Shown piece by piece: positions 48,887 through 64,000 of a DNA stretch of 64,000 nt. The DNA comes from Cyanophora paradoxa CCMP329 (lineage: Eukaryota > Plantae > Glaucophyta). A program made the translations under genes and the position numbers. The DNA lies in NCBI GenBank assembly GCA_004431415.1, contig QPMI01000201.1:50998-114997 (forward strand), in the 5' to 3' direction. Positions within the stretch are counted from its first letter, which is position 1, and each line of letters opens with the position of its first letter. The notes beneath the pieces were generated by a model, which saw nothing but the letters and a program-made list of their open reading frames with translations, had not been told where the DNA came from and searched no databases.

Positions 48887-49423
48887 ATGGGGCGCGATAC
48901 GCCATCACGGGCTTGTAAGAAACCGCCGTCGGACTCCCCGGCCGCGGGCACCCCCAAGCGAAAGAAGCGCTCGACAGAGAGGTCTGTCTCCGTCTGGTGG
49001 CCATGGACGCTGCTGGAGATCCTCACTGATCAGACCGCTTGGAGCGCAGCGTGCAGAGTACGAAGAAGCAGCGCCCTCGCGTTCCGGGTCCCCGAGACCT
49101 GCAAGATCTGGACGAGATCAAATTGCTTGGCTTCGTGCAGTCGACTCGCTTTCACAAGCCCGCAACTGGTGAGCGCCTGACAGCATGCACAGGGTCTGCA
49201 ATTTAGTAAAGGAGTCTGATATAGAAGTGCGATCCAGACTGCCCGAGCTACGCCGCGTTCGACGTGCATGTGCTTTGGTGCAGCGAAGAGGCCTTGATCG
49301 GCCAAGTCATCACGGCCTCGGGGGCATTCCCATCTCTAAGTGCGTGCCAAATCCTCGCCATGGCCGGCCCGTGGCGCTCGCAGCCCCCCTACGGCGCCCA
49401 GCTCAAGGTGCCGTTCTTCCCCG

Positions 49424-49468
<45 letters not shown>

Positions 49469-50419
49469 ACACACACACCCCCCACCCCCACCCCCCACCC
49501 GCCCCCGCCTCTCTTTTCGGCCCGTTCGAGACCGGCTCGGTCCGCGCAGGTGCAGCGCTGGGAAGATATGCAGAAGGGGACCGAGCGGTACAAGTCTTCC
49601 AGCTCAGGCAAGGGTGCCGCTGGTACCCCCCGCCCCCCCCTCCCCTCCCCCTCCCCCCAAACCCTGCGGCTCCCCTTTCCTTCCCCTCTCACGCGCGGCT
49701 CCCCTCTCATCAAGTCTGAGCCATGGCCATTTGCATGCGCAGGACATCAGCTGAATGACGTCATGGGCTTCCTCCTGGTACCCCCGGCGCAGTCCCCGCC
49801 GCCCTACCCCGAAGAGTTCGTCGCGTGGGACCTGGAGACCACCGGCCTCGACCTCCGGAGCGACGAGATCCTGTCGATCGGGGCCGTTCGCTTCCGCGGG
49901 GGGCACCCCACCGAGTGCTTCAGCACGCTGGTCGCCCTCCCGGAGGGCTGGCGGGGAAGGATCCACCCCGAGGCTTTGGCCAAGCACGGCATCACGGCCG
50001 AGAAGGTCCAGGGGGCCCCCTCGGCAAGCGAGGCCATCAAGGCGCTCGTCGACTTCGCCGGGCCGGCTGGGACGTTCGTCGTCGGCCATCGGATCGCTAA
50101 GTTCGACGCGCCGCTCCTCCTCGCCGCCGCCGGGCGCGCCGGCGTTCCGGAGGGGGCCCTCGAGGCGATCCGCGGCTGGGCCGCTATCGACACGATCGAG
50201 CTCTCCGGCCCGTGGGCGCGACGGAGGCGCATCTTCATTGACAGTTTCAAACTCGAGAATCTCGCCGCGCGCTTCAAGATTCCCCTGAGGAAAGCGCACG
50301 ACGCCCTCCAGGACGCCGAGGCGTCGGGCAGGCTCCTCCTCCACCTGATGGAGGAAGGGCAGGCGCTGGCGGACCTCGTCTTCAGGCCCCCCGCGCCCGC
50401 GCCCGCAGCGATAGCCTAG
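48887..50419 (+). CDS. DEDDh (DnaQ-like) 3'-5' exonuclease with N-terminal RecD2-like OB segment
   Basis: Single large exon ~49743-50419: FVAWDLETTGL, VGHRIAKFD, IDT, AHDALQDA. Upstream exons read VITASGAFPSL...AGPWRSQPPYGAQLK-VQRWE. The 5' end is uncertain. Confidence 0.8.
49423..49500. repeat. Poly-C plus (CA)n microsatellite in an intron
   Basis: About 30 C followed by about 12 CA units. Confidence 0.9.
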
Positions 50420-51571: not shown

Positions 51572-54500
51572 ATGGGGTGCGGCGCTAGCAGCTGCAGCTG
51601 CAGTGGTGCCTTGAGCTCCCCAGCTACAACGCTAGCGACGTCGACCGCGAGCGGTCCGCTTCCGCGATCGGACACCATGATCAGCAGTGCGGCTGAAGGC
51701 GAAGCGCGCGCCGATCAAGGCACCGGTACCAGCTCGAGGCATGCGCAGATGCAGCGCGTGGGCGGACTCCACGGCATGTGCGGGCCGGAAGAGCTCCGCG
51801 GGATCGTGCGAGTGGAGGAAGCGCGAACCGTGGCGCAGCTTGCGGGCCTGCTGCGATCGGAGCTCGAGCGCACGCAGATGGCTGACCGCCTACGTACGTA
51901 TGCGGAAGACTCTGAGACTTCGACGTCGACGATCGTGACAACATCAAAACGGAGAGCCTCACATTGCCGGAGATGCTGCCCGCGGTCGAGGACCTGGCGC
52001 GCAGGAAGGAACCGTCAGTGGAAGTGCTCAGGAGGCTCTGCCGGAACGGTGAGCGCGTGCCACGGTGATTGCGATCGGACCCCTAGTTGTAGGCCTAGGC
52101 CTAGGCCTGCAGTTCGGCCCATGGCCATGGACAGCCTAGGCCTCGGCCTGCGCGCGCGCACGGGCCGGGGCGCGCGACGCGTACGGCTAATCACACTCGC
52201 TGGCCAGTGCTGGAAACGACCTTCGCAAATAACCGGATTCTGAGCGACGAGGGCGAGCTCGCGGAGGTCGGCGCGCTGGTCCACACGGGGGACCGGGACA
52301 TCTGCCGCGCGGTACGCGTGCCCGTCGTCGACGTCGCGCCGTCGATCGCCCGCCGATCGCGACGCGCGCAGCTCGTGGCCGCGATCGCCGCGCGGGCGAA
52401 GGAGGCGATCCTCAAGGACCGCGCGGCCCTCTCCGTGCTGGCGGCCCTCGTCGGGCACTTGCCGCCGGAGACCCTCGAGCCCGAAGACTGGGACATGCTG
52501 CTGACCGTCTGCGCCGACCAGGCGAGCGCGCCACGCAGTGGAGGGCCGGGGCCGCGCTGACGTGGACGGCGCCGGCCGGGGCAGGTGAAGGGCTTGGAGG
52601 GGCAGCCGATGGGCCCAAACAACAGCGGCGCCCAAGCCTCCCTCGAACTCACGGCCGCCGTCCTCTCTGCCGCCGAGTCGGTGTCGGGGCCCTCTGCCGC
52701 CCAAGCCCCCGATCGTGATCGTGAGGACGAGGGGACGTCGACGGCCCCAAGGCCTGCAGACGCCGCAGCTCCGGATCTCGCCGCACCAGGTTGGCCGCGG
52801 ACGCCCCGCGCGCACGCGACGCGTACGCCGCTCGACGCCTGATCCGTCAACATCGTCGCGCAGTTGTAGCGGCAGGGCAGCGGGTGCAGATAAACCCGAA
52901 GAAGGTTAACGTTGCCTCGCTGAGGCAGCAGCTCAAAAAGCTGGAGGAGAGGGCAAAGGGAGAGAAGTGGTGGCGGGCAGAGGCAGCGGCGCAGCTCGCG
53001 GAGCAGGCGCTCGCGGGCGTCGGAGAGCGAGACGGGCGCTTCGGCGACGTTGTCCGCAGAGGCAGGGCAGCCGGTGCGCCCCCAATCTAACTCGAAATTC
53101 TCCATCGCGTTCTTCTCCGGTGACGTCCGAGGCCCGGCCGCGCAGGGCGGATTCTGCTGAAGCTGTACTCTGTCGGGAAGATCATCGCCGGGGGCGTCTC
53201 CTCGATGGGCGCAACGACCGTCATCGACCTCCTCCTGTGGCTCAGGGTTCGCCCAGCTTGGCTCTCGTCCGCGAGGCCGCTGGCGACGACCGCGCACGCG
53301 CAGGATCTGGCGGGTGACGACGGCGAGAAGGGAGGGGCGCTGGGCGCCATGCGGGAGCTGTGGGACGACGTCTGCACCGTCGCCGGCAGAGGGACGCAGC
53401 TGCAGGGGCGGGAGGCCTGGTACGCCGCTCTGGCCTCGCGGGCGATCGCGAGGACGGGGGCGGGAGGCTTGCGCCCTCACGTGCACGCTGGCGCGCAGGT
53501 ACGGACAGGCGCGGCTTCTGGGCTTGGTGGCGGCGAGCGGCGGGATGGCGGAGCTGAAGGGGCTGCTGGAGGGCGGGGAGGACGCCGGCGAGGGGGCCCT
53601 CGCCGCCTGCGCAGCCTGCCGCCCCCTCGCCCTCGCCCTCGCGTCCGCCCTCTTCCGCGTGCGTCCCCGTTTTCGTAACGTCCCTCTTCAAAGTAGCGCG
53701 CGGCTGCTGATGGGGCCGGGGCAGGTTGTGGAGGGTCCCGATGGAGCGCAGGCGAAGGTGGCAGCGGAATGGCTCGGGAAGCTCGCGGAGCAGGCGGTGT
53801 CAGCGGGCGGGGCGGGTGGGGCGGACGCGGCGGAGGTTGCGGCCGGGGCGCTCGCGCACGTGGCGTGCATCGACGGCATCGAGGGCGTGGCGCAGGTCGG
53901 CGCAATTGCGCTGAAGCGGCTGGCGGAGCGCGGGGCGGCGATGCAGCCGCTGGCGGGTAGCGTCGGCTGCCTCGCGGCCTTCGCGCGGCGGTCAGAGGCG
54001 GCCGGGGAGCGCGCCGCTGGGGCGCTGAGCTGCGCCTCCGAGCTCATGGAGGAGGTGGGCCTCGACGACGCCGCCCGCGCGACGAAGCAGGCGGCGGGCG
54101 TGGCGACGCAGCTTTCGGAGACCATGCAGCGCGTGCTGGACAACAAACACGTGACTGTCGTCCTGGAAGCCCTCAAGGCACTCGACCGGGCCCCGCGATC
54201 CAACGCTCGCGATCGGCCCATGGCCAAAGCATCGACGCTGCCCAAGTTTCGCCGGGCGCTGCACGCGATTCCCCAGGCGAAGCTCGAGCTCGGGATTAAC
54301 AAGTACCTGAAGAAGGTGCTGGCTGAGCACAAGGAGGCGGTGCGGATCCCGGAGGCGTACCCGGGGACCCTGTGCCGCTGCGCGCCTGACCGGCTGTCGG
54401 GGCGGCGGGGCAGGTAGAGGAGAGCCTGAAGCCAGTGAAGAGCGTGCACGTCCACGGGACGATGAAGGACCTGGAGAAGGTCGACTGGCTCCTCCAGGAC

Positions 54501-57500
54501 CTCTCCAAAGACCTCTGGTGCGGCCCCCGCCCCCGTGGCCGCCCCCGCGCCGCCGCCAGCTTCACGAGCCGGCGCAGTGGGCTGGCGCCGCACGCGCTGC
54601 TTCGCGGCTGCAAGAGCAGCTGCACGGGGAAGGCCTTCGTGCTCGTTGCGGGTGCAGCGTCGGTCCGAGAGGCCGCATGCCTGAAGGCCCTCGACGAGGG
54701 TACGCCGAGCTTGTGGCGGCCGCGCCCGCCGCCTGGTGCTCATGATCATGATTGCTGATGGCGCCCGCAGCAATCGAGGCCGGACGGGACGTGTTCCAGC
54801 TGTACCCGGACGGGGCGCGAGACGCGCTGCTGCGTGTTCCGGACGGCATCGACATGCGCCTCAGCCGCTTCGAGCAGGTTCGCTCTGGATTGATTGGCTT
54901 TAATTTTGAGAGTATATATACTGCCGGGACCGTGCTTATGCAAGCCACCTGCATGCGCAGCTGGAGACGGATTCGGGCCGCTCTCGGGACCCTGTGGAGG
55001 CCTTCATCGGTGTAGTGCAGCGCGCCTGTCGCATCCCGCGCCCTCCGGCGGTCGGCGAGCACAAGGTCACGCCGCGATACCGGTGGCAGCAGCAGCAGCG
55101 AGCTGGCGAATCGATATCGCAGGCGCAGCCTCCTGCCGGCACCCCCGCATGGGCTCTCGCCAAGTCCGCACCTGCGGCCAGCCAGAGCGCCACGCGAGTC
55201 TTCTTCTGCCACGCGCCCGATCGTGAGGACGTGGCGGCCGTCCAGCAGCAGATGGCAACTCTGGCCGAGCTGGAGGCCGGTGTCGACTGCTGGTGCGCGC
55301 GCGCGCCCACCTCCGCTCCGCGCGCATCGCCCGCCCACGCAGGCGCGCGCACCGCAGGTCGGGCATCGAGCACTGGCAGGGAGGCGAGCGCTGGGTCGAT
55401 GTCGGTGCGCGCGGACGGCTGACTTAAAGCTTGACGTTGCCGCGCGCGCGCCGCTCACCGCGCCGCAGTGGCCTGCGCCATCCACAACTGCTCGCACTTC
55501 GTCCTCGCCCTCTCCCCTCTGCTCATCCGCTCTCAGGTCCGCCCACCCTTCCTGAGCGATCCCCGCACTCGCCCGACTCCGCGGCAGCACTGCGAGGAGG
55601 AGTTCGCGTACGCGTGCAGCCGCGACTGCGCGATTCTGGTGCTGCAGCTGAGGCGGGAGGGGAAGGAGGAGGACTGGATCGCAAAGCACCTGCAGCGCGT
55701 GGCGCCCGAGCGCGTGCAGCGAGTCGCGGCCTCGTCAGACCGGGCCGCCCTCGCCCGCGCCCTCAACGCCGGGCCTCGGGCCGCCGAAGGGCGCGCGGTC
55801 GTGTTCGAGCGGCGGGCGGAGCTGTGCGCCCCTCCCTCGGAGGTGCACACGCGGCTTCGAGCTCGCGATCGCGGACGCCAGCGAGCCGACGCGGCGCGCA
55901 GGCAAACGCACTGCGATGGACGGATTCGGACGTCGTTGCCTGGGCCCGCTCGCAAGAGAGCCTCGCGCCGTGCGTCATGATCACGTGGGGCCGGCGCGGC
56001 CCTCGACTGTCCTTGAGCTTGACACTTTCGCGCGCGCGTACAGTTTCGCGGAGCGTCTCTCGCTTCTGAATGGGAGGAGACTGCTTTCCCTCACCGATTC
56101 CGCTTTGCAACAGCTCGGCTTTGATCGCGTTGCCGCGCGCTGGCATCTCCTATCGAAGATCGCCGCTCTATCCAAGTCATCGCTGGCGGGCTGCGACAGG
56201 AAGGTGCTGCGATAGATAATGAACACTGATGGAGTTGGTGTTGATTCCTCAGAGCAGAAGGAGGTGCTGTGCTGGAATGAGGAGGATGTCGTGGAGTGGG
56301 TCGGCTCAATCGGACCCCTCGCGCAGTGCGCACATGCATATGCACACCAGCCAGCGTCACGCGAGGTCGGTGCCGAGCTCAAGGCGCCCCGCAGGTTTGC
56401 GGGGCTCTTCTCGCTGGTGTCGGGGCCGATGCTGCTCTCCATGTCCGACACGGATCTCGAGCGTCTGGGTGTGACAAGCTTCGCGGCCCGCCAGCGGCTG
56501 CTCGAGAAGATTGCCGGCCTCGACCCGGGGCCGGTTCCTCTCTCGACTCCGGCAGAGCCCGCGGGCTCGGAGGCGAAGTCTGCGAGCGATCGCGAGGGCC
56601 CGGAGCCAGCCGCGCGCGTCGTCGATCTCGACGCCCACGGAGCGCTGATTCACAAGGTGTGCATATATGCATGCGCCCGGCACGTCACACTTTGCAATTG
56701 GCATGTCGCCCAGCGTGCTCACAATTTGCATTCGAATTCGATTTGCACTTTCTGCAGTACGCGGAGGCGCAGAAAGCAGAGCTCTCGCGCGACCAGGACC
56801 TCGCCCTCTACGTCCCGCCCCTCTCCACGGCGGACCCGAAACTGCCGCCCGACGTGCCCTCCGTTGACCCGGCCATGCGAATCGAATTCGAACCACGCCT
56901 GACTCTGGCGGCCTCAGAGACACGAGCCCCTCCACGTGAAGGCCGAGGAGTTCCTCTCGGCGCTGCGGCCCCGCCGGCTGCAGCCCGCGGCTGGCGACGT
57001 CGTCGTCAACGTCAACGTCGAGGCAAAGCCCGCGGCCGGCCAGCGGGCCGACGCGAACGCGAGGCCCAAGCGCGTGCTGCTGCTCCTCGGCGGGGCGGGC
57101 ACCTCGAAGAGCACCTTCCTCCGCTCCTTGCAGCGCGACGCCTGCGGCCGATGGGCGAACCCGGGCGACGGCGCCGGCGCCGAGCGCCTGCCGGTGACCG
57201 TGCTCGTCTCGCTGCCGCAGCTCGCCGGCATGAAGGGCGGCGTGGAGGGCGGGCTGCGGCAGCACGTCGCCGACAAGCTCGGCGTCCCGGTGGAAGACCT
57301 GCCGGCCCTCCGGGACAAGTGCTCTTCTCCTCCAGCTTCATCGATATCGTGCACGTGGTTTCTTTCCGTGAAATTAACGGGGCGCCAGGTTCGGGCTCGC
57401 TCTCCTGCTCGACGGGTACGACGAGATGGGCACGACGAGCGGCGTCAACCTCTGGCAGGCGAACGACGTGTCGGTGTGGGCGGACGGCGCCATTCTGACG

Positions 57501-60500
57501 TGCCGGACGGAATTCCTCGCCTCGCTGGTCAAGGGGAAGCCGCCCGAGGTGATCTGCCGCGGCCTCGCGCGCAATTGCTCTGCAATAACGAGAGCAGGAC
57601 TGCTTCGCGCCCAGCGGGGAGGACAAAAGCCCCGGCGCAAAGGGCTTGGCTCAGCTGCACACTGTGCCTTTCGACACGAAGCAGGTGCACAGCGCACTCG
57701 CTCGCCCGGCAGCGAAGTCGAAGCGCGAGCGTTCGTCCTGCGCATGCGCCCAGCGGGAGGAGTACCTGCGGCGGTACTCGGAGCGGCACGCGGGCGAGGA
57801 GGGGGCGTGGACCTTCGAGCGGTACGCGGAGGCCCTCGCGCGGACGCCGGGCCTCGCGGACCTCGCCGAGAACCCCTTCTCCCTCTCCATGCTCGCCCGC
57901 GTCCTCCCGTCAGAGTCCGACTCGCTCCCTGCGTCTAGAGGATAGGCTGATTAAGCTCACGCACGCGTACGCCGTGCGCAGGGCGGAGGCGGGAGGACGG
58001 ATCCGGCTGCGCGATCTCTACCGGCTCTTCCTGCGGGACTGGCTGCTGCGGGAGCTGCACCGCGGGAACGTCAACAGGCAGCGAGACGAGCAAGGTACGA
58101 CTTTTTATCGCTAGCGCTGGCCAACTGGAGCGACGGTCTAATCATGACGTCGCACAAGGCTGGAAGTCGGCGGAAGATGCTTTTGTCGAAGAAGGGACGG
58201 CCTTCTGCAAGCAACTCGCCTCCGTCCTCTTTCGCGTGAGCCTCGCTCCTCGATCACACGTACACACACAGATGTGCTTGTGCACGCACGCAGATGTCGG
58301 CTAGCCATGCGTCCATCCCGGATGTCGACCCGGGCAAGCAAAAGCTGTCGAATCCGAGCTTGGCATCCGAGCAGCGCGCCCTCTCCGAACTGCTGGGCGA
58401 CCGCAGGAAGCTCTTCGTGCGAAACAGCTGCCCGCTGCGGCGGTGGCGGCAGGGCGGCTCGCTCGGCTTCGCGTTCGTGCACAAGACGCTGCAGGAGTTC
58501 CTCTCCGCGGAGGCGCTCCTCGAATCGGTGGGTGCACTCGCTAGAAGAGGGTGGGGGGGGGGAGGGCTGGAGAACGTTAATTAATATTATAACGGCAGTT
58601 CTCCGGTTGAGACTGAATCTTGTACCAATCGTGGGAAATGTCTGCGCGCAGTTGCCGGGCGGGGGTGATCCGAGCAATGTCATCGACATCACATTGAGGA
58701 CGCGGTGTGCCATTTAATATTAATTGCGTGATACAACGTCTCACAGGAACATTGACGTCGACGTCATGATCGATATCTTCGATTCGCAGGAGCATTGTGG
58801 AAGAGTCGACGCTTGTCCGATTCCTGGCGGAGGCCGTTCAGCGCGAGCCGCAGGCCGTCGTTGCAAACGCTCTCGTGCAGATCGTAAAGTCGAGCCGGCC
58901 GCCGGACGCTTCTGGGAAGGCCGTCGAGGATGAAGGGCCGGAGGTCATTGCAGCAGCAAACGCGGCGACCATCCTCGTCGCTGGTTCGTGCCATCGTGTA
59001 CTTCATGCTGTTTGAGCGCATGCCCAGCTAGAGGTTCTTGCGATGGACCGCGCAGGCCACTACTCGCTTGCAGGCCACGACTTGCAGGGTGTGCGTATTC
59101 CCAGGGCGAATCTGTGGCGGCTGGAGGCGGCAGGGGCAAATCTTCAAGGGGCAGACCTGCGGCACTGCGCGATAGGCGAGGCGTGCCTGATGGGCGCGGA
59201 TCTGCGGAAAGCTCGCATGGACGGCTGCCGAGCGATGCAGTGGCCGGCGTTGCTGCACAATAGTCAAGTCAACGCTGTTGCGTGGACACCGGTGCGAGCG
59301 AGAAGGCCGCTGGCGACACGCTACGAAGAATTCCGAGGCTAGCGTGCGGGTGAGGGTGCGCATGCTGACGGGGGGCGCGGGGGCGCGGCGCGCAGGACGG
59401 GAAGCGGATTGTCTCGGGGAGCAAAGACAAATCGGTGCGGGTGTGGGATGCGGAAACAGGGGAGAAATTGCTGCAGCTGCAAGGCCACACGGACGAGGTC
59501 ACCTCGGTGGCGGTGTTGGCGGTGCGCAATTGCAAGGGAGGGGCGGGGCCTGGGCGGTCTGGAGGACGTGCAGCGGGCGTCACGAAAGCAACAGGGCTGG
59601 CGCAGGGCCGCAATAGGGCACAGAGAGCTTTCGGCGACGCCCAACGGGGCCTGATGCGAGCCCATTGCGAGGCCGTTGAGGGCGCTGACGGGGGCGCGGG
59701 GGCGCGGCGCGCAGGATGGGAAGCGGATCGTCTCAGGGAGCATCGACAAATCGGTGCGGGTGTGGGATGCGGAAACAGGGGCGGAGCTGCTGCAGCTGCA
59801 AGGCCACACGAGCACGGTCACCTCCGTGGCGGTGTCGGCGGTGCGCGAGGGAGGGGCGGGTTCGAGGCGGCCCAGAGGACGTGCAGCGGGCTTAATTTGC
59901 GAAGGAAATGGGGCCGGCGCGGGGCCGCGATAGAGCGCGGAGCGCTTCTGGCGACGCCCAACAGGACCGTTGGAGCCGGGGTGAGCGCGTTGTGGGGCCG
60001 TGAGGGGGCTGACGGGGGGCGCGGGGGCGCGGCGCGCAGGACGGGAAGCGGATCGTCTCGGGAAGCCACGACAACTCGGTGCGGGTGTGGGACGCGGAAA
60101 CAGGGGAGACAGTGCTGCAGCTACAAGGGGAAGGCCCCACGGATCGTGTCAGCTCAGTGGCGTTGTCGCCGGTGCGCAAGGGAGGGGTGGGTGCGGGGTG
60201 GCCCGGAGGATGCGCAGCGCGGCACAGCGGGGCCGGCGTGGCCCAGCGGGCCGGGGCCGCGATAGCGCGCGAAGCGCTTCCGACGATACTCGACGGGGTC
60301 CGGGGCGAGCCCATGGCGAGGCCGTGAGGGGGCTGACGGGGGGCGCGGGGGCGCGGCGTGCAGGACGGGAAGCGGATCGTCTCGGGGAGCCACGACAATT
60401 CGGTGTGGGTGTTGAACGCGGAGACAGGGGAGGAATCGAAGCTGGTGCAGCTACAACGGAAAAGCGGCAGGGATCTTTTCAGCTCAGTGGCGATGTCGGC

Positions 60501-63500
60501 GGTGCGCAAGGGAGGGGCGGGTTTGGGGCGGCCCGGAGGACGTGCAGCGCGGCCCAGCGGGGCCGGCGCGGCCCAGCGGGGCCGCGATAGCGCGCGGAGC
60601 GCTTTCGGCGACGCCCAACGGGGCCCGTGGTGAGCGCATTGCAAGGCTGTGAGGGCGCTGACGGGGGCGCGGGGGCGCGGCACGCAGGATGGGAAGTGGA
60701 TCGTCTCGGGGAGCCACGACAATTCGGTGCGGGTGTGGAACACGGAGACAGGGGCGAAGCTGGTGGAGCTGCAAGGCCACAAGAGATGGATCACATCGGT
60801 GGCAGTGTCGGCGGTGCGCGAGGGAGGGGCGCGGGTGGGGCATCCCGGAGGACGTGCAGCGCGGCTTGCATAGGGGATGGGCCCAGCGCTGGGCTGCGAT
60901 AGCGCACGGAGCGCTTCATGATCACGCAATGCCCGTCGGGTCCCGGGGCGAGCGAAAATCGTGGACTTGGGGGCGCTGACGTGGGAGCTGGGGCGCTGAC
61001 AAGGGCGTGGGGGCGCTGACGGGGGCGCGGAGACGCGGCGCGCAGGACGGGAAGCGGATTGTCTCTGGGAGCGGGAACAAAGCGGTGCGGGTGTGGGACG
61101 CAGTGACAGGGGAGACGGTGCTGCTGCTGCGAGGCCACACGGACGCGGTCACCTCGGTGGCGTTGTCGGCGGTGCGCATGCGCAAGGGAGAGGCGGGGGC
61201 GGGGCAGCCCGGAGGACGTGCAGTGCGGCTCTCGATCGCATAGAGGATGGGCCCAGCGCGGGCCGGGGCCGCGATAGCTCGTGGAGCGCTTCACGCAATG
61301 CCCGACGGGGCCCAGGGCGAGCGGTTTGCAAGGCCGTGAGGGCGCTGACGGGGGGCGCGGGGGCCTGTCGCGCAGGACGGGAAGCAGATCGTCTCGGGGA
61401 GCAGGGACAGATCGGTGCGGGTGTGGGATGCGGAAACAGGGGCGGAGCTGCTGCAGCTGCAAGGCCACACGGAATATGTCAACTCGGTGGCGGTGTCGGC
61501 GGTGCGCGAGGGAGGAGAGAGGGGCGGGGTTCTGGGCGGCCCGAAGAACGTGCAGCGGGCATCGCAAAGGGGATGGGGCCGGCGCGGGGCCGCGATAGCA
61601 CACGGAGCGCTTACGGCGACGCCCAATGGGGCCCGGGGCGAGCGCGTTGTGAGGCCGTGAGGGTGCTGACGGGGGCACGGGGGCGCGGCGCGCAGGACGG
61701 GAAGCGGATCGTCTCGGGGAGCCACGACAATTCCGTGCGGGTGTGGAACGCAGAGGCAGGGGAGACGCTGCTGCAGCTGCAAGGCCACACGGACGGTGTC
61801 AACTCGGTGGCGGTGTCGACGGTGCGCGAGGGAGGAGAGAGGGGCGGGGCGGCCCGGAGGATGTTCAGCGGGCGTCGTGAAGGCGACGGGGCCGGCGCGG
61901 GGCCGCGATAGCGCACGGAGCGCTTCCGGCGACGCCCATTTAATATGGGGCCCGTGGTGAGCGCATTGTGAGGCCGTTGAGGGCGCTGACGGGGGCACGG
62001 GGGCCTGTCTCGCAGGATAGGAGGTGGATTGTCTCGGGGGGAAGGGACAAATCGGTGCGGGTGTGGGACGTGGAGACAGGGGCGGAGCTGCTGCAGCTGC
62101 AAGGCCACACGGACTGGGTCACCTCCGTGGCGGTGTCGGCGGTGCGCAAGGGAGGAGCGAGGGGCAGGTTCAAGGCGGTCTAGAGGACGTGCAGCTGGCA
62201 TTGCGAAGCCAAAGGGGCTGGCGGGGTGACGCTAAAGCGCGCGGAGATCTAGAGCGTCCGACGACGCCCAATAGGGCCCGGGGCGAGCGCATTGCAAGGC
62301 TGTGAGGGTGAGGGTGCTGACGGGAGGCGCGGCGCGCAGGACAGGAAGCGGATCGTCTCGGGGAGCCTCGACAACTTGGTGCGGGTTTGGGACGCGGAAA
62401 CAGGGGAGACGCTGCTGCAGCTGCAGGGCCACACAAAGATGGTCTTCTCGGTGGCGGTGTCGGCGGTGCGCGAGGGACGGGTGGGTGCGGGGGCTGGGCG
62501 GGCCAGAGGACGTGCAGCGGGCATTTCGAAGAGGGACGGGCTAACGCACGCGGGCACGCTGAGAGCTTTCGACAATGCCCAACAGGGCCAGGGGCGAGCA
62601 CACTGCAAGGCCGAGAGGGTGAGGGTGCTGACGGGGGGCGCGAGGGCGGGGCGCGCAGGACGGAAAGCGGGTTGTCTCGGGGAGCAAGGATACCTCGGTG
62701 CGGGTGTGGGACGCGGAAACAGGGGAGACGCTGCTGAACCTGGAAGGCCACACGGAATGGGTCACATCGGTGGCGGTGTCGACGGTGCGCGAGGGAGGAG
62801 AGAGGGGCGGGGTTCTGGGAGGCCCGAAGAACGTGCAGCGGGCATCGCAAAGGGGATGGGGCCGGCGCGGGGCCGCAATAGGGCACAGAGTGCTTTCGGC
62901 GACGCCCAATGGGGCCCGGGGCGAGCGCATTGCGTGGCCATGAGGGTGCTGACGGGGGCGCGGGGGCGTGGTGCGCAGGACGGGAAGCGGATCGTCTCGG
63001 GGAGCCATGACAAATCGGTGCGGGTGTGGGACGCGGAAACAGGGGAGACGCTGCTGCTGCTGGAAGGCCACACGGACTGGGTCATCTCCGTGGCGGTGTA
63101 CATGTTGGCGGTGCGCGAGGGAAGGGCGGGGCCTGTGCGGTCTGGAGGACGTGCAGAGGGCGTTGCGAAGCCGACGGGGCAGGCGGGGGGCCGCGATAGC
63201 GCACGGAGCGCTTCCGGCGACGCCCAACGGGGCCCGTGGTGAGCGCATTGCAAGGCCGTGAGGGCGCTGACGGGGGCACGGGGCCTGGCGCGCAGGACGG
63301 GAAGCGGATCGTCTCAGGGAGCATCGACAAATCGGTGCGGGTGTGGGACGCGGAAACAGGGGCGGAGCTGCTGCAGCTGCAAGGCCACACGTACGGTGTC
63401 AACTCGGTGGCGGTGTCGGCGGTGCGCGAGGGAGGAGAGAGGGGCGGGGTTCTGGGAGGCCCGAAAAACGTGCAGTGGGCATCGTAAAGGGGACGGGGCC

Positions 63501-64000
63501 GGCGCGGGGCCGTGATGGCGCGCGGAGCGCTTCCGGCGACGCCCAACGGGGCCCGTAGTGAGCGCATTGCGTGGCCATGAGGGGGCTGACGGGGGCGCGG
63601 GGGCGTTGTGCGCAGGACGGGAAGCGGATCGTCTCGGGGAGCCACGACAACTCGGTGCGGGTGTGGGATGCGGAAACAGGGGCGGAGCTGCTGCTGCTGC
63701 AAGGCCACGCGGACTCGATCACCTCGGTGGCAGTGTCGGCGGTGCGCGAGGGAGGAGAGAGGGGCGGGGTCCTGGGCGGCCCGAAGAACGTGCAGCGGGC
63801 ATCGCAAAGGGGATGGGGCCGGCGCGGGGCCGCAATAGGGCACAGAGTGCTTTCGGCGACGCCCAATGGGGCCCGGGGCGAGCGCATTGCGTGGCCATGA
63901 GGGGGCTGACGGGGGCGCGGGGGCGTGGTGCGCAGGACGGGAAGCGGATCGTCTCGGGGAGCCGCGCCAACTTGCTTACTTGCTGCTGGGGGGGGTGCGG
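51572..64000 (+). CDS. NLR-like protein: ARM-like, TIR (degenerate), TIR, SAM, SAM, STAND/NACHT-like NTPase, pentapeptide, WD40 array; runs off the window
   Basis: TIR2: RVFFCHA...DCW...[14 protein letters not shown]...[11 protein letters not shown]. SAMs: WTDSDVVAW...[17 protein letters not shown] and WNEEDVVEW...[17 protein letters not shown]. Walker [12 protein letters not shown], Walker [54 protein letters not shown], then WD40 exons. The link from start MGCGAS to the next exon is less certain. Confidence 0.88.
59396..64000 (+). repeat. Tandem ~320-bp exon+intron units, one WD40 repeat per exon
   Basis: Exons at 59396-59521, 59715-59840, 60040-60171, 60364-60501, 60688-60813, 61046-61171, 61376-61501, 61696-61821, 62016-62141, 62340-62465, 62659-62784, 62979-63110, 63296-63421, 63616-63741, and 63936- (partial). 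All are CAG|GA(C/T)...|GTGCGC, phase 0, with a CTGAC branch site. Confidence 0.96.

Follow-up and report, generated by a model that had tools for sequence, protein, structure and literature searches.

The tandem array of WD40 exons that reaches the end of the 64,000-nucleotide stretch of Cyanophora paradoxa DNA analyzed here (the window) is probably the C-terminal sensor of an NLR-type (STAND) receptor, one that diversifies in the germline as does Podospora HET-E/NWD and has the exon-per-repeat layout of Ectocarpus receptor genes. The array supplies at least 15 WD40 blades, which probably form two β-propellers. Ligands would bind on the top face, and activation would be NLR-like with a TIR output. 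The domain architecture suggests a role in non-self recognition or immune function.

Anatomy of the WD40 Array

Tandem Repeats Finder, run on the window, placed an array with a period of 320 at 59364–63970 (14.2 copies, score 3539). The 320-bp unit occurs 14 times at 59396–63935 and consists of one phase-0 exon and one homologous intron of ~194 bp. The earlier note on this DNA had claimed at least 14 complete exons of 126 bp (three of 132–138 bp), all multiples of three, and extraction recovered exactly these. The exons lie between upstream flanks ending in cag and downstream flanks beginning with gtgcgc; they are 126, 132, or 138 bp long, in phase 0 in 14 of 14 cases, and contain no stop codon.

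59292–59395, + strand: intron preceding E1 (RNA joint; final 46 nt resemble array introns)
59396–63741, + strand: whole WD40 block E1–E14, with 13 homologous introns of 185–232 nt between the exons
59396–59521, + strand: WD40 exon E1, 126 bp
59715–59840, + strand: WD40 exon E2, 126 bp
60040–60171, + strand: WD40 exon E3, 132 bp
60364–60501, + strand: WD40 exon E4, 138 bp
60688–60813, + strand: WD40 exon E5, 126 bp
61046–61171, + strand: WD40 exon E6, 126 bp
61376–61501, + strand: WD40 exon E7, 126 bp
61696–61821, + strand: WD40 exon E8, 126 bp
62016–62141, + strand: WD40 exon E9, 126 bp
62340–62465, + strand: WD40 exon E10, 126 bp
62659–62784, + strand: WD40 exon E11, 126 bp
62979–63110, + strand: WD40 exon E12, 132 bp
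63296–63421, + strand: WD40 exon E13, 126 bp
63616–63741, + strand: WD40 exon E14, 126 bp
63742–63935, + strand: intron 14 (3 of 194 positions differ from intron 11, 62785–62978)
63936–63962, + strand: incomplete 15th WD40 exon, start only (identical to E12 for 28 nt; departs from the repeat pattern 27 nt in)

By translation each exon encodes one WD40 unit, and E1 alone scores 36.7 bits against Pfam WD40 (cut-off 27); the description of one unit per symmetric phase-0 exon, with shared splice signals, holds for all 14. The repeat consensus keeps D11, W17, and H31, plus the strand-b serines at positions 7 and 9, such that the DH[S/T]W tetrad is in place. Exons E3 and E4 are degenerate, having in-frame insertions and lacking the GH dipeptide, with E4 lacking the WD as well. 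Pairwise nucleotide identity among all 14 exons is 72–93% (mean 83%), the array introns are ~80% identical (maximum 98.5%), and at the amino acid level the canonical repeats are on average 75% identical in pairwise comparison. Array exons and array introns alike have a GC skew of +0.30, and the remaining window has one of −0.01.

The resemblance of the intron preceding E1 to array introns was seen by blastn, in which an intron 7 query matched 59350–59395. No further exon or intron copies occur outside the array on either strand of the window, and there are no spare, inactivated, or reverse-strand repeat exons, as a tblastn query with one repeat hit the 15 exons, in their order, and nothing else. 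At the end of the window (64000), the last bin has single-copy DNA depth. This copy of the gene could be truncated, since its array is interrupted at exon 15 and its 3' end lies outside the data.

The Gene around the Array

The array forms the C-terminal end of a gene that runs from 52207 to past 64000 and encodes, in order, a TIR-homologous region, two SAM domains, a NACHT-like ATPase, pentapeptide repeats, and WD40 repeats. Because the ATPase and TIR domains are split by introns, we relied on colinearity with the paralog P0001.

52207–54877, + strand: N-terminal region of the same gene, colinear with P0001 residues 25–699 (tblastn of P0001 against the window)
54985–55740, + strand: TIR-homologous region, intron-split, colinear with P0001 residues 719–905 (tblastn)
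55899–56521, + strand: two SAM domains, colinear with P0001 residues 921–1063
56758–58526, + strand: NACHT-like STAND ATPase module in several exons, matched by tblastn to P0001 residues 1096–1528
57089–57115, + strand: Walker A, GGAGTSKST, from the sequence
57402–57425, + strand: Walker B, LLLDGYDE, from the sequence
58091–58154 and 58236–58293, + strand: ATPase introns, GT..AG joints in RNA-like contigs
58651–58703 and 58789–58983, + strand: two linker exons, from an RNA-like contig, frames checked
59056–59291, + strand: exon with pentapeptide repeats and the first WD strand (…VNAVAWTP), Pfam Pentapeptide E 2.8e-8

The SAM and pentapeptide Pfam matches fall on the window itself (SAM_1, E 3.8e-8 on 56219–56902, with a weak SAM match on 55916–56215), and the three-part order also follows from colinearity with P0001. 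Exons were searched singly, and paralog proteins served for folding. Run exon by exon on the ATPase and TIR regions, Pfam yielded nothing useful, with no TIR match on the window's own pieces. In P0001, which matches Pfam TIR, SAM, and pentapeptide families and has the order TIR, SAM, ATPase, pentapeptide, WD40, residues 787–865 match TIR_2 (E 6.4e-10) inside the stretch colinear with the TIR-homologous region of the window; residues 1–780 match no Pfam family. The Walker A and B motifs are invariant in nine paralogs. Toward the array, a single RNA-like contig (run X19) links 58294–58526, 58651–58703, and 58789–58984, and the joint from 59290 to 59395 is GT..AG in an RNA-like contig of run X17.

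Class of the ATPase and Extent of the Family

The Pfam NACHT family (PF05729, gathering score 26.7 bits) had no match on the exons of the window and scored 15.3–26.1 bits in the paralogs, under the cut-off in all of them; in five paralogs it ranked first or nearly first among P-loop families, with AAA_16 slightly ahead in P0001. A profile of nine paralog ATPase modules gave only generic P-loop matches (E >0.04) to the sequences of solved structures. Fold comparison was carried out on P0001 as the closest paralog, 58% identical to the window over the ATPase region. An AlphaFold2 model of P0001 residues 1100–1560, made with 9 paralogs (pLDDT 79, pTM 0.80), was searched with Foldseek, and the 49 best matches were all NACHT NLRs, NLRC4 being first (E 8.6e-11, TMq 0.55–0.57) and followed by NOD2, NLRP9, and NLRP3. 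We consider the class settled as NACHT-like by the predicted fold of this paralog.

All eukaryotic relatives identified belong to Cyanophora paradoxa, the family having expanded inside one species. The only relative found outside Cyanophora is P0012 (locus L001), an intronless gene of bacterial type in which NACHT is followed by pentapeptide repeats and then by WD40. The arrays of the paralogs carry 14–15 stretches matched by Pfam WD40, and P0005, P0008, and P0009 have a C-terminal tail. Among paralogs the WD scaffold is 72–92% identical and the ATPase regions are 39–58% identical. We found no published description of this Cyanophora NACHT/WD40/TIR family in the literature.

Variable Positions and Probable Selection

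Variation is concentrated at repeat positions 10, 12, 33, 34, and 36, in the b–c turn and d–a loop, and the residues previously listed at SGS-x-D-x and GH-xxx-V-x agree with the sequence. Three of these positions, 10, 34, and 36, coincide with D-1, R1-2, and R1, the hotspots on the top face in Wu et al. 2012 (PMC3419727). In Podospora NWD repeats, two loop pairs are under positive selection (Paoletti et al. 2007, PMC1805685); the variable sites match both pairs, in the b–c turn and in the d–a loop, each around a conserved residue, as expected from the proposal that variation clusters at Podospora-type ligand-face positions. Structural mapping was taken from paralog models. In the AlphaFold2 model of P0009 (pLDDT 82.5), which has four strands per repeat, positions 10–12 form the b–c turn and 30–34 the d–a loop. 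The paralogs P0005, P0008, and P0009 are variable at the same positions.

The homologous introns are copied along with the exons and hence provide a built-in neutral yardstick, as well as markers of recombination tracts. Diversity is 0.20–0.215 in introns and 0.176 at four-fold sites. Scaffold codons are constrained (pN 0.086), and the five variable codons have a pN of 0.488; dN at these five is 3.4-fold the dS across all codons and 3.1-fold the intron distance. Only 2 of 100,000 random draws of intron columns reached the diversity of the variable codons. The five codons, 12% of the exon, hold 49% of the differences within the 12 closest exon pairs, and the five-residue combinations are all distinct among the 11 canonical exons. 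The reading frame is likewise maintained: just 47 of 5000 neutral simulations left the 11 canonical exons without a stop, and exon indels are all multiples of three, as against 16 of 23 intron gap runs that are not.

Synonymous change within the five variable codons is high as well (pS 0.47), giving a within-class dN/dS of only 1.08; this ratio is uninformative because the five codons are saturated and have too few synonymous sites (~3.5). Local mutation bias at the variable codons is less likely than selection.

Recombination between Repeat Units

Recombination between units is detectable: in the PHI test, none of 2000 permutations was at or under the observed value. Units 11 and 14 are nearly identical over a stretch with two arms.

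62780–63006, + strand: one arm of the tract, covering the end of E11, intron 11, and the start of E12
~63737–63963, + strand: partner arm of the tract, with intron 14 corresponding to intron 11

Across the 194-nt intron the arms have 3 differences, and the start of the next exon is identical, whereas the 126-nt exons just upstream have ~24 differences. Introns are better conserved than exons in this pair of units only, and we read this as one recent conversion or duplication tract, not as selection acting on introns. Repeats are 74–79% identical within genes versus 53–61% between genes, with the exception of the paralogs P0005 and P0008, which are 77% identical to each other and lie on a common contig. 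Simple neighbor-by-neighbor duplication has left no sign, as unit identity is flat (0.80–0.82) at most distances.

A model for the array begins with tandem amplification of the entire 320-bp exon-plus-intron unit, which would account for each repeat having its own phase-0 exon and for the homology of the introns. Unequal crossing-over and gene conversion among units would then keep the scaffold uniform and move variants around, while selection, or less likely local mutation bias, would keep the five residues of each blade different.

Transcription, Splicing, and Assembly

Transcription and splicing are shown by RNA-like contigs, from which introns are missing precisely at four predicted borders within the array and at five upstream of it, all GT..AG. 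The joints precisely excise 60172–60363, 61172–61375, and 63111–63295. All unambiguous RNA joints connect neighbors (the exon preceding E1 to E1, E3 to E4, E6 to E7, and E12 to E13), in low-depth contigs that reach joints and not isoform counts.

Three joints in RNA contigs connect non-neighbors; back-splicing, exon skipping, and an extra copy were considered for them and rejected. A joint from E4 to E4 was dropped, as E4 and E5 have an identical 32-nt stretch; so was one from E14 to E6, as the E5/E6 and E14/E15 junctions have 18 + 14 = 32 nt in common. With contigs built from 31-letter words, identities of 32 nt make mis-joins possible in both cases. The third, from E11 to E15, was dropped because one of its sides is 29 nt long, with 28 of these common to E12 and E15.

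Unit-specific contigs from two independent DNA runs are identical to the window, at a depth of 47–71 as compared with 61–68 in the single-copy flank, and both runs have single-copy depth over all 30 bins and zero differences; the runs, which consist of short-read contigs possibly from one strain, are identical where comparable.

Alternative Explanations

The array might instead have arisen by a recent repeat expansion of the ordinary kind, in a WD40 protein with a scaffold or regulatory role, the variable residues then reflecting relaxed constraint on surface loops. Relaxed constraint lifts change to the neutral level at most, and so the level seen at the five codons, 3.1–3.4 times that of introns or synonymous sites, counts against this explanation, as do the hypervariability of the same positions in independent paralog arrays, the NLR architecture with its TIR-homologous region, and the enlargement of the family within one species. 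We regard the explanation as unlikely, even though the within-class dN/dS is only 1.08, repetitive WD40 proteins with variable hotspots are common in bacteria and fungi and are seen as young duplications (PMC5587647), and the closest solved structure, 2ymu, is such a protein. Still less probable is that the array is an assembly artefact, its drawn structure being the product of collapsed or wrongly joined repeats. Short-read DNA contigs do break here (220–405 nt, with many short-sided joints), exon 15 ends abruptly, and Podospora arrays of such kind are not assemblable from Illumina data (PMC12222747). However, every unit is distinct in sequence, four exon junctions are spanned by RNA contigs in the drawn order, and the concern about an artefact was answered by the two DNA runs, in which the array matches the window at single-copy depth; we give this explanation almost no weight.

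In combinatorial alternative splicing, a further alternative, cells would skip or choose among interchangeable exons and obtain many receptor isoforms from one gene. Symmetric phase 0 in all exons means that any skip remains in frame, the splice signals are identical, and alternative splicing has been reported in ROCO genes of brown algae (PMC11378527). The unambiguous joints are nevertheless between neighbors only, and the three odd ones are trivially explained by common stretches or ambiguous placement, which makes such splicing quite improbable. Of the earlier proposal of exon shuffling and/or combinatorial splicing, then, exchange at the DNA level stands, through the PHI test and the one tract, and mixing by splicing is without support. 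Programmed or somatic DNA rearrangement, by which homologous G-skewed introns would recombine in clonal lineages and generate cell-to-cell receptor diversity, is most improbable. The intron identity, the mosaic structure detected by the PHI test, and a GC skew that might favor R-loops upon transcription are compatible with it. However, unit-specific contigs are unchanged and single-copy in the two DNA runs, the skew reflects one unit copied 14 times and is hence one observation, and G-quadruplex motifs (7 on the array coding strand) are no denser than in other 4.5-kb stretches of the window; no recombinase or other rearrangement machinery was identified. A broader form, in which the array is a substrate for rapid within-clone diversification through intron recombination during transcription or through regulated exon choice, is scarcely more plausible; in that case the sensor arrays carried or expressed would differ among the cells of a single culture. 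Germline diversification of an NLR-type sensor remains our preferred explanation.

Significance

Hypervariable repeat sensors homogenized by recombination were known from fungal NLRs, and exon-per-repeat receptor genes from brown algae. Here both features are combined in a glaucophyte TIR-SAM-NACHT-WD40 family, which brings Archaeplastida, and a unicellular organism, into the range of this design for recognition repertoires, and argues for repeated origin of the strategy wherever STAND receptors face fast-changing ligands. Intron-less fungal arrays have no built-in neutral yardstick of the kind described above, which makes the Cyanophora family a tractable case for study. A further question posed by the family is what TIR-bearing receptors would recognize in a free-living alga, whether viruses, bacteria, or conspecifics. 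The value of these results is tempered by the principle being already known, the function being inferred, and splice-based or somatic diversification being without support here.

Comparison with Known Systems

As in the HET-E/HET-D/NWD (HNWD) proteins of Podospora anserina, a NACHT-type ATPase is followed by a long array of similar 42-residue WD40 repeats, which are closer within a gene than between genes and bear traces of exchange. Concerted evolution of the HNWD type is seen in the within- versus between-gene identities, the PHI test, and the recent tract, and excess non-synonymous change is found at the paired top-face positions. RIP is a fungal process and is unexpected in Cyanophora. In both systems hypervariable residue pairs surround a conserved residue in the b–c turn and d–a loop of the top face (PMC1805685). 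The Cyanophora gene differs in having a TIR-homologous region and SAM domains at its N-terminus, where Podospora has HET, and a pentapeptide segment before the WD40 repeats. Its repeats sit on individual exons accompanied by homologous introns, making the recombining unit 320 bp of exon plus intron, whereas the fungal arrays are intron-less. Repeat identity is also lower (75% amino acid identity as compared with about 85%), and this mean lies below the fungal criterion for high internal conservation, which demands ≥85% identity among repeats across a minimum of 100 residues (Dyrka et al. 2014, PMC4986451).

The exon-per-repeat precedent invoked for brown algae is real. In Ectocarpus ROCO-LRR and NB-ARC-TPR genes (Zambounis et al. 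2012, PMC3341825), every repeat occupies its own phase-0 exon of uniform length, ligand-face residues are under positive selection, and diversity has been proposed to stem from exon duplication or shuffling. The layout of one repeat per phase-0 exon in candidate STAND/ROCO receptors is common to both, four of the array borders here being confirmed by RNA. The Cyanophora repeats are WD40, which require a closed propeller, in contrast to the open LRR and TPR solenoids of Ectocarpus; the introns contain no repeat exons that are inactivated or on the reverse strand; and the host is a unicellular glaucophyte with a NACHT-like ATPase.

Bacterial repetitive WD40 proteins such as 2ymu, the best structural match of the paralog model (44% identity, E 2.3e-55), resemble the array in having near-identical repeats with variable hotspots, in this instance in a 14-blade double propeller, although the bacterial genes are intronless. 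According to Hu et al. 2017 (PMC5587647), highly repetitive WD40 proteins occur in bacteria, fungi, and some protists, whereas animals and plants yielded none. Descent of the Cyanophora family from a bacterial gene is only a hypothesis.

With animal NLRs, the sequence identity of the ATPase is only 12–16%, and the sensor is WD40 rather than LRR; Apaf-1 for its part has NB-ARC in place of a NACHT-like ATPase. The modeled ATPase of the paralog family nonetheless superposes on the NACHT modules of NLRC4, NOD2, and NLRP3, and Apaf-1 also senses through WD40 repeats, arranged in two propellers (structure-match ranks 25, 38, and 45). The succession of effector, ATPase, and repeats is common to the Cyanophora gene, animal NLRs, and Apaf-1.

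Organization of the array and its gene

The window has one tandem array, at 59364–63970 (Tandem Repeats Finder period 320, 14.2 copies, score 3539), and no copies of its exons or introns were found in the rest of the window on either strand. Its units, each an exon with the following intron, were cut out at the splice borders to give 14 complete exons (E1–E14), eleven of which are 126 bp, two 132 bp, and one 138 bp in length. All 14 are in phase 0, are bordered by ...cag on the 5' side and gtgcgc on the 3' side, and have no stop codons; one exon alone exceeds the Pfam cut-off for WD40. The array introns (185–232 nt) can be aligned with one another end to end. All checkable details of the array in the earlier note (exon number, lengths, phase, borders, and WD40 match) were correct. 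The partial E15 starts at 63936, is the same as E12 over 28 nt, and leaves the repeat pattern after about 27 nt (63962–64000), the window ending at 64000.

E3 and E4 (60040–60501) are degenerate blades, lengthened in frame by 6 and 12 inserted nt. Their GH dipeptide is gone (GEGPTDRV and RKSGRDLF), WD has become VL-N in E4, and both are still spliced into RNA (E3-to-E4 joint). Intron 5 is the longest (232 nt) because of an internal tandem repeat (60969–61030, period 20, 3.1 copies), which is a duplicated branch and acceptor-proximal motif (…ggggcgctgac…). The coding (non-template) strand of the array is strongly G-rich, with a GC skew over 59396–63935 of +0.30 in exons and +0.32 in introns, compared with −0.01 in window 1–51000 and 0.04–0.15 in segments of the gene 5' of the array; its G-quadruplex motif density is ordinary.

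Two SAM domains lie 5' of the array on the same strand, and a single upstream exon encodes pentapeptide repeats and the first WD strand. The gene is colinear with P0001, a Cyanophora paradoxa paralog and the closest relative in the protein search with the Walker A exon described below, which has Pfam matches to TIR_2, SAM, pentapeptide, and WD40; a TIR module is predicted in the window copy by this homology, in place of a direct Pfam match. The ATPase part (56854–58293) has very small introns, two of 58 and 64 nt with RNA support and two predicted ones of 64 and 70 nt, as compared with ~194 nt in the array.

Features of the putative receptor gene and its upstream neighbor
49340–50419, + strand, ORF of 359 residues immediately 5' of the putative receptor gene; Pfam RNase_T (DEDD 3'-5' exonuclease), E 4.2e-16; Pro/His/Thr-rich, low-complexity N-terminal start
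52207–59521, colinear with P0001 (residue 25 through the C terminus)
57089–57115, same strand as the array, P-loop GGAGTSKST
57402–57425, same strand as the array, Walker B motif LLLDGYDE

The array in DNA and RNA

Parts of the window occur in 20 public sequencing runs, all from one organism. Four of these, two of DNA and two probably of RNA, were compared with 58001–64000. Unit-specific contigs showed zero differences from the window in both DNA runs, at a depth of 47–71 versus 61–68 in the unique flank. This identity at single-copy depth speaks against a repeat that the assembly had collapsed or made up, and counters the assembly artefact that the earlier note had named as a possible refutation. 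Nine introns, five upstream and four involving the array, are missing from RNA-like contigs exactly at their GT..AG borders, indicating that the gene is expressed and its transcripts are spliced at the predicted borders. The array is thus real DNA and is expressed, and another of the refutations named, a lack of transcripts, failed.

Introns spliced out in RNA-like contigs
58091–58154, upstream of the array
58236–58293, upstream of the array
58527–58650, upstream of the array
58704–58788, upstream of the array
58984–59055, upstream of the array
59292–59395, before E1
60172–60363, E3–E4
61172–61375, E6–E7
63111–63295, E12–E13

Three RNA joints connect non-neighboring exons (E4 to E4, E14 to E6, and E11 to E15), as exon skipping or back-splicing might produce. 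The RNA contigs, in which rare isoforms could be missed, were assembled from 31-letter words, and each joint falls at a shared stretch: an identical 32-nt stretch is common to E4 and E5, the E5|E6 and E14|E15 junctions have 18+14 = 32 nt in common, and one side of the E11–E15 joint is 29 nt, of which 28 are common to E12 and E15. These stretches trivially explain all three joints, and we take none of them as a sign of skipping or back-splicing. The combinatorial splicing proposed earlier, and splice-based or somatic diversification generally, are unsupported.

Contigs of two DNA runs align with the ends of introns 13 and 14 and then, at 63602 and 63922, run into unrelated sequence, suggesting that the same intron is also present at another locus or in a structural variant.

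A divergent NACHT-like ATPase

The Walker A exon had only 12 relatives at E < 0.001 among 1.84 billion representative proteins, 11 of them from the glaucophyte Cyanophora paradoxa. The only non-Cyanophora relative, P0012, is encoded by a bacterial-type gene that lacks introns; its modules run P-loop, pentapeptide, NACHT, pentapeptide, WD40, and its WD repeats are nearly identical to one another. In its region (L001 3001–7833 and 7807–9580; 75-kb contig, GCA_016307145.1) the gene comes after another NACHT-WD40 gene and adjoins phage lysis (holin, lysozyme) and tail-assembly genes.

In the paralogs tested, Pfam NACHT always stayed under its cut-off (15–26 bits versus 26.7), and was the top or near-top P-loop family, with AAA_16 slightly ahead in P0001. 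A nine-module ATPase profile had no match among solved-structure sequences. In an AlphaFold2 model of the ATPase module (pLDDT 79, pTM 0.80), the 49 best Foldseek matches were exclusively NACHT NLRs, led by NLRC4 (E 8.6e-11, TMq 0.55–0.57), followed by NOD2, NLRP9, and NLRP3. Based on domain order and these modeled fold matches, we call the gene a putative receptor of the NLR type, whose NACHT-like ATPase is divergent.

Variation is concentrated at five codons

When the 14 exon translations are aligned, scaffold columns hardly vary, entropy is high at positions 10 and 12 of the repeat (S-G-S-x-D-x) and 33, 34, and 36 (G-H-T-x-x-V-x), and variation is moderate at 23, 24, and 27, bearing out the two variable motif stretches noted earlier from the sequence. 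The 11 canonical (126-bp) exons have 11 distinct five-residue combinations. Introns are copied along with the exons and so serve as a neutral yardstick.

Diversity within the array
Introns, mean pairwise diversity 0.20–0.215
Four-fold sites of invariant scaffold codons, diversity 0.176
Scaffold codons, pN 0.086, dN/dS 0.45
Five variable codons, pN 0.488

At the five codons dN is 3.4 times the all-codon dS and 3.1 times the intron distance, and only 2 of 100000 random ten-column intron draws matched the diversity at their first and second positions. In the 12 closest exon pairs, 49% of nucleotide differences fall within these codons, which make up 12% of the exon. The expected excess of dN over dS holds relative to all codons, but pS inside the five codons is also high (0.47, resting on ~3.5 sites in saturated codons), as local mutation bias would have it, and such a bias is formally still conceivable.

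The exons are clearly maintained as coding sequence. Neutral simulation predicts a stop codon in ~4 of 11 exons, and only 47 of 5000 simulations had none, as is the case here. Exon indels are all in-frame, whereas 16 of 23 intron gap runs are out-of-frame.

Variable residues map to the predicted propeller top

Wu et al. 2012 (PMC3419727) gave sequence rules that place R1 between the two bulky residues that open strand a, and D-1 directly ahead of the tetrad Asp; they found that R1, R1-2, and D-1 account for most top-face contacts in 29 complexes. By these rules, R1 is position 36, R1-2 is 34, and D-1 is 10. In Podospora, Paoletti et al. 2007 (PMC1805685) found two selected pairs at the propeller top, each with a conserved residue inside; the d-a loop carries the first pair and the b-c turn the second. 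The pairs 34-V35-36 and 10-D11-12 have the same pattern, in agreement with the earlier assignment to Podospora ligand-face sites.

The fold was mapped on the WD region of the paralog P0009, using an alignment of 13 further segments from four family arrays, including shifted P0009 segments. The best solved match of the model (pLDDT 82.5) was 2ymu, "a highly repetitive propeller structure" (44% identity, E 2.3e-55), and next came double seven-bladed propellers and Apaf-1.

Repeat positions in the P0009 model
4–9, strand b
10–12, b-c turn
13–18, strand c
24–29, strand d
30–34, d-a loop
35–40, strand a

Exchange among repeats and paralogs

The PHI test rejected a recombination-free history of the window array (observed 0.517 versus 0.583 ± 0.013; 0 of 2000 permutations), and identity does not drop with distance between units. 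One recent event is directly visible: introns 11 and 14 have 3 mismatches over 194 positions and the exons after them start identically, as compared with ~24 of 126 differences between the exons just upstream. Introns are better conserved than exons in this pair alone, the whole-array identities being 80% (introns) and 83% (exons). Units have thus exchanged sequence, as had been proposed.

The paralogs P0005, P0008, and P0009 have 14–17 repeats each, hypervariable at the same positions. Repeats are 74–79% identical within genes versus 53–61% between genes, except for P0005 and P0008 (both on contig tig00021070), whose repeats are 77% identical between genes, as high as within each; these two also have the same WD repeat type and C-terminal tail. 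Their likeness suggests inter-locus exchange or recent gene duplication. Repeat scaffold consensuses of window and paralogs are 72–92% identical, and the ATPase regions only 39–58%. The repeats evolve in concert, and the variable-site pattern is family-wide.

Discussion

Building on the anatomy, expression, site pattern, and recombination observed, we propose that the array arose by tandem amplification of one exon-plus-intron unit, which would account for one repeat per exon, uniform phase, and homologous introns without calling for numerous intron gains. Between units, unequal crossing-over and conversion would homogenize the scaffold and redistribute variants, while diversifying selection would maintain differences among blades at the five top-face residues. 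By analogy with the Podospora HET-E/NWD receptors and other NLRs, a ligand on the propeller face might release the NACHT-like ATPase, with signaling then through the SAM and TIR-homologous modules, and the protein may function in non-self recognition.

No published description of such genes in Cyanophora was found in the literature; Chlamydomonas NACHT-WD40 proteins have been listed, without analysis of repeat variation (PMC4773052). The array shows the same behavior as fungal HNWD genes, but its gene has no HET domain, its repeat identity is under the fungal 85% criterion (PMC4986451), and introns lie inside the array. It shares its fold and repetitiveness with bacterial highly repetitive WD40 proteins (PMC5587647), but has introns and a eukaryotic host. 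The exon-per-repeat precedent cited earlier from brown algae is real: Ectocarpus ROCO-LRR and NB-ARC-TPR genes (PMC3341825) have the same layout, whereas the Cyanophora introns are without spare or inverted exons and its repeats close into a propeller instead of building an open solenoid. The diversification principle has already been established for fungi and for brown algae; the Cyanophora array extends receptor diversification of the HNWD kind to a glaucophyte, with introns that provide internal neutral markers.
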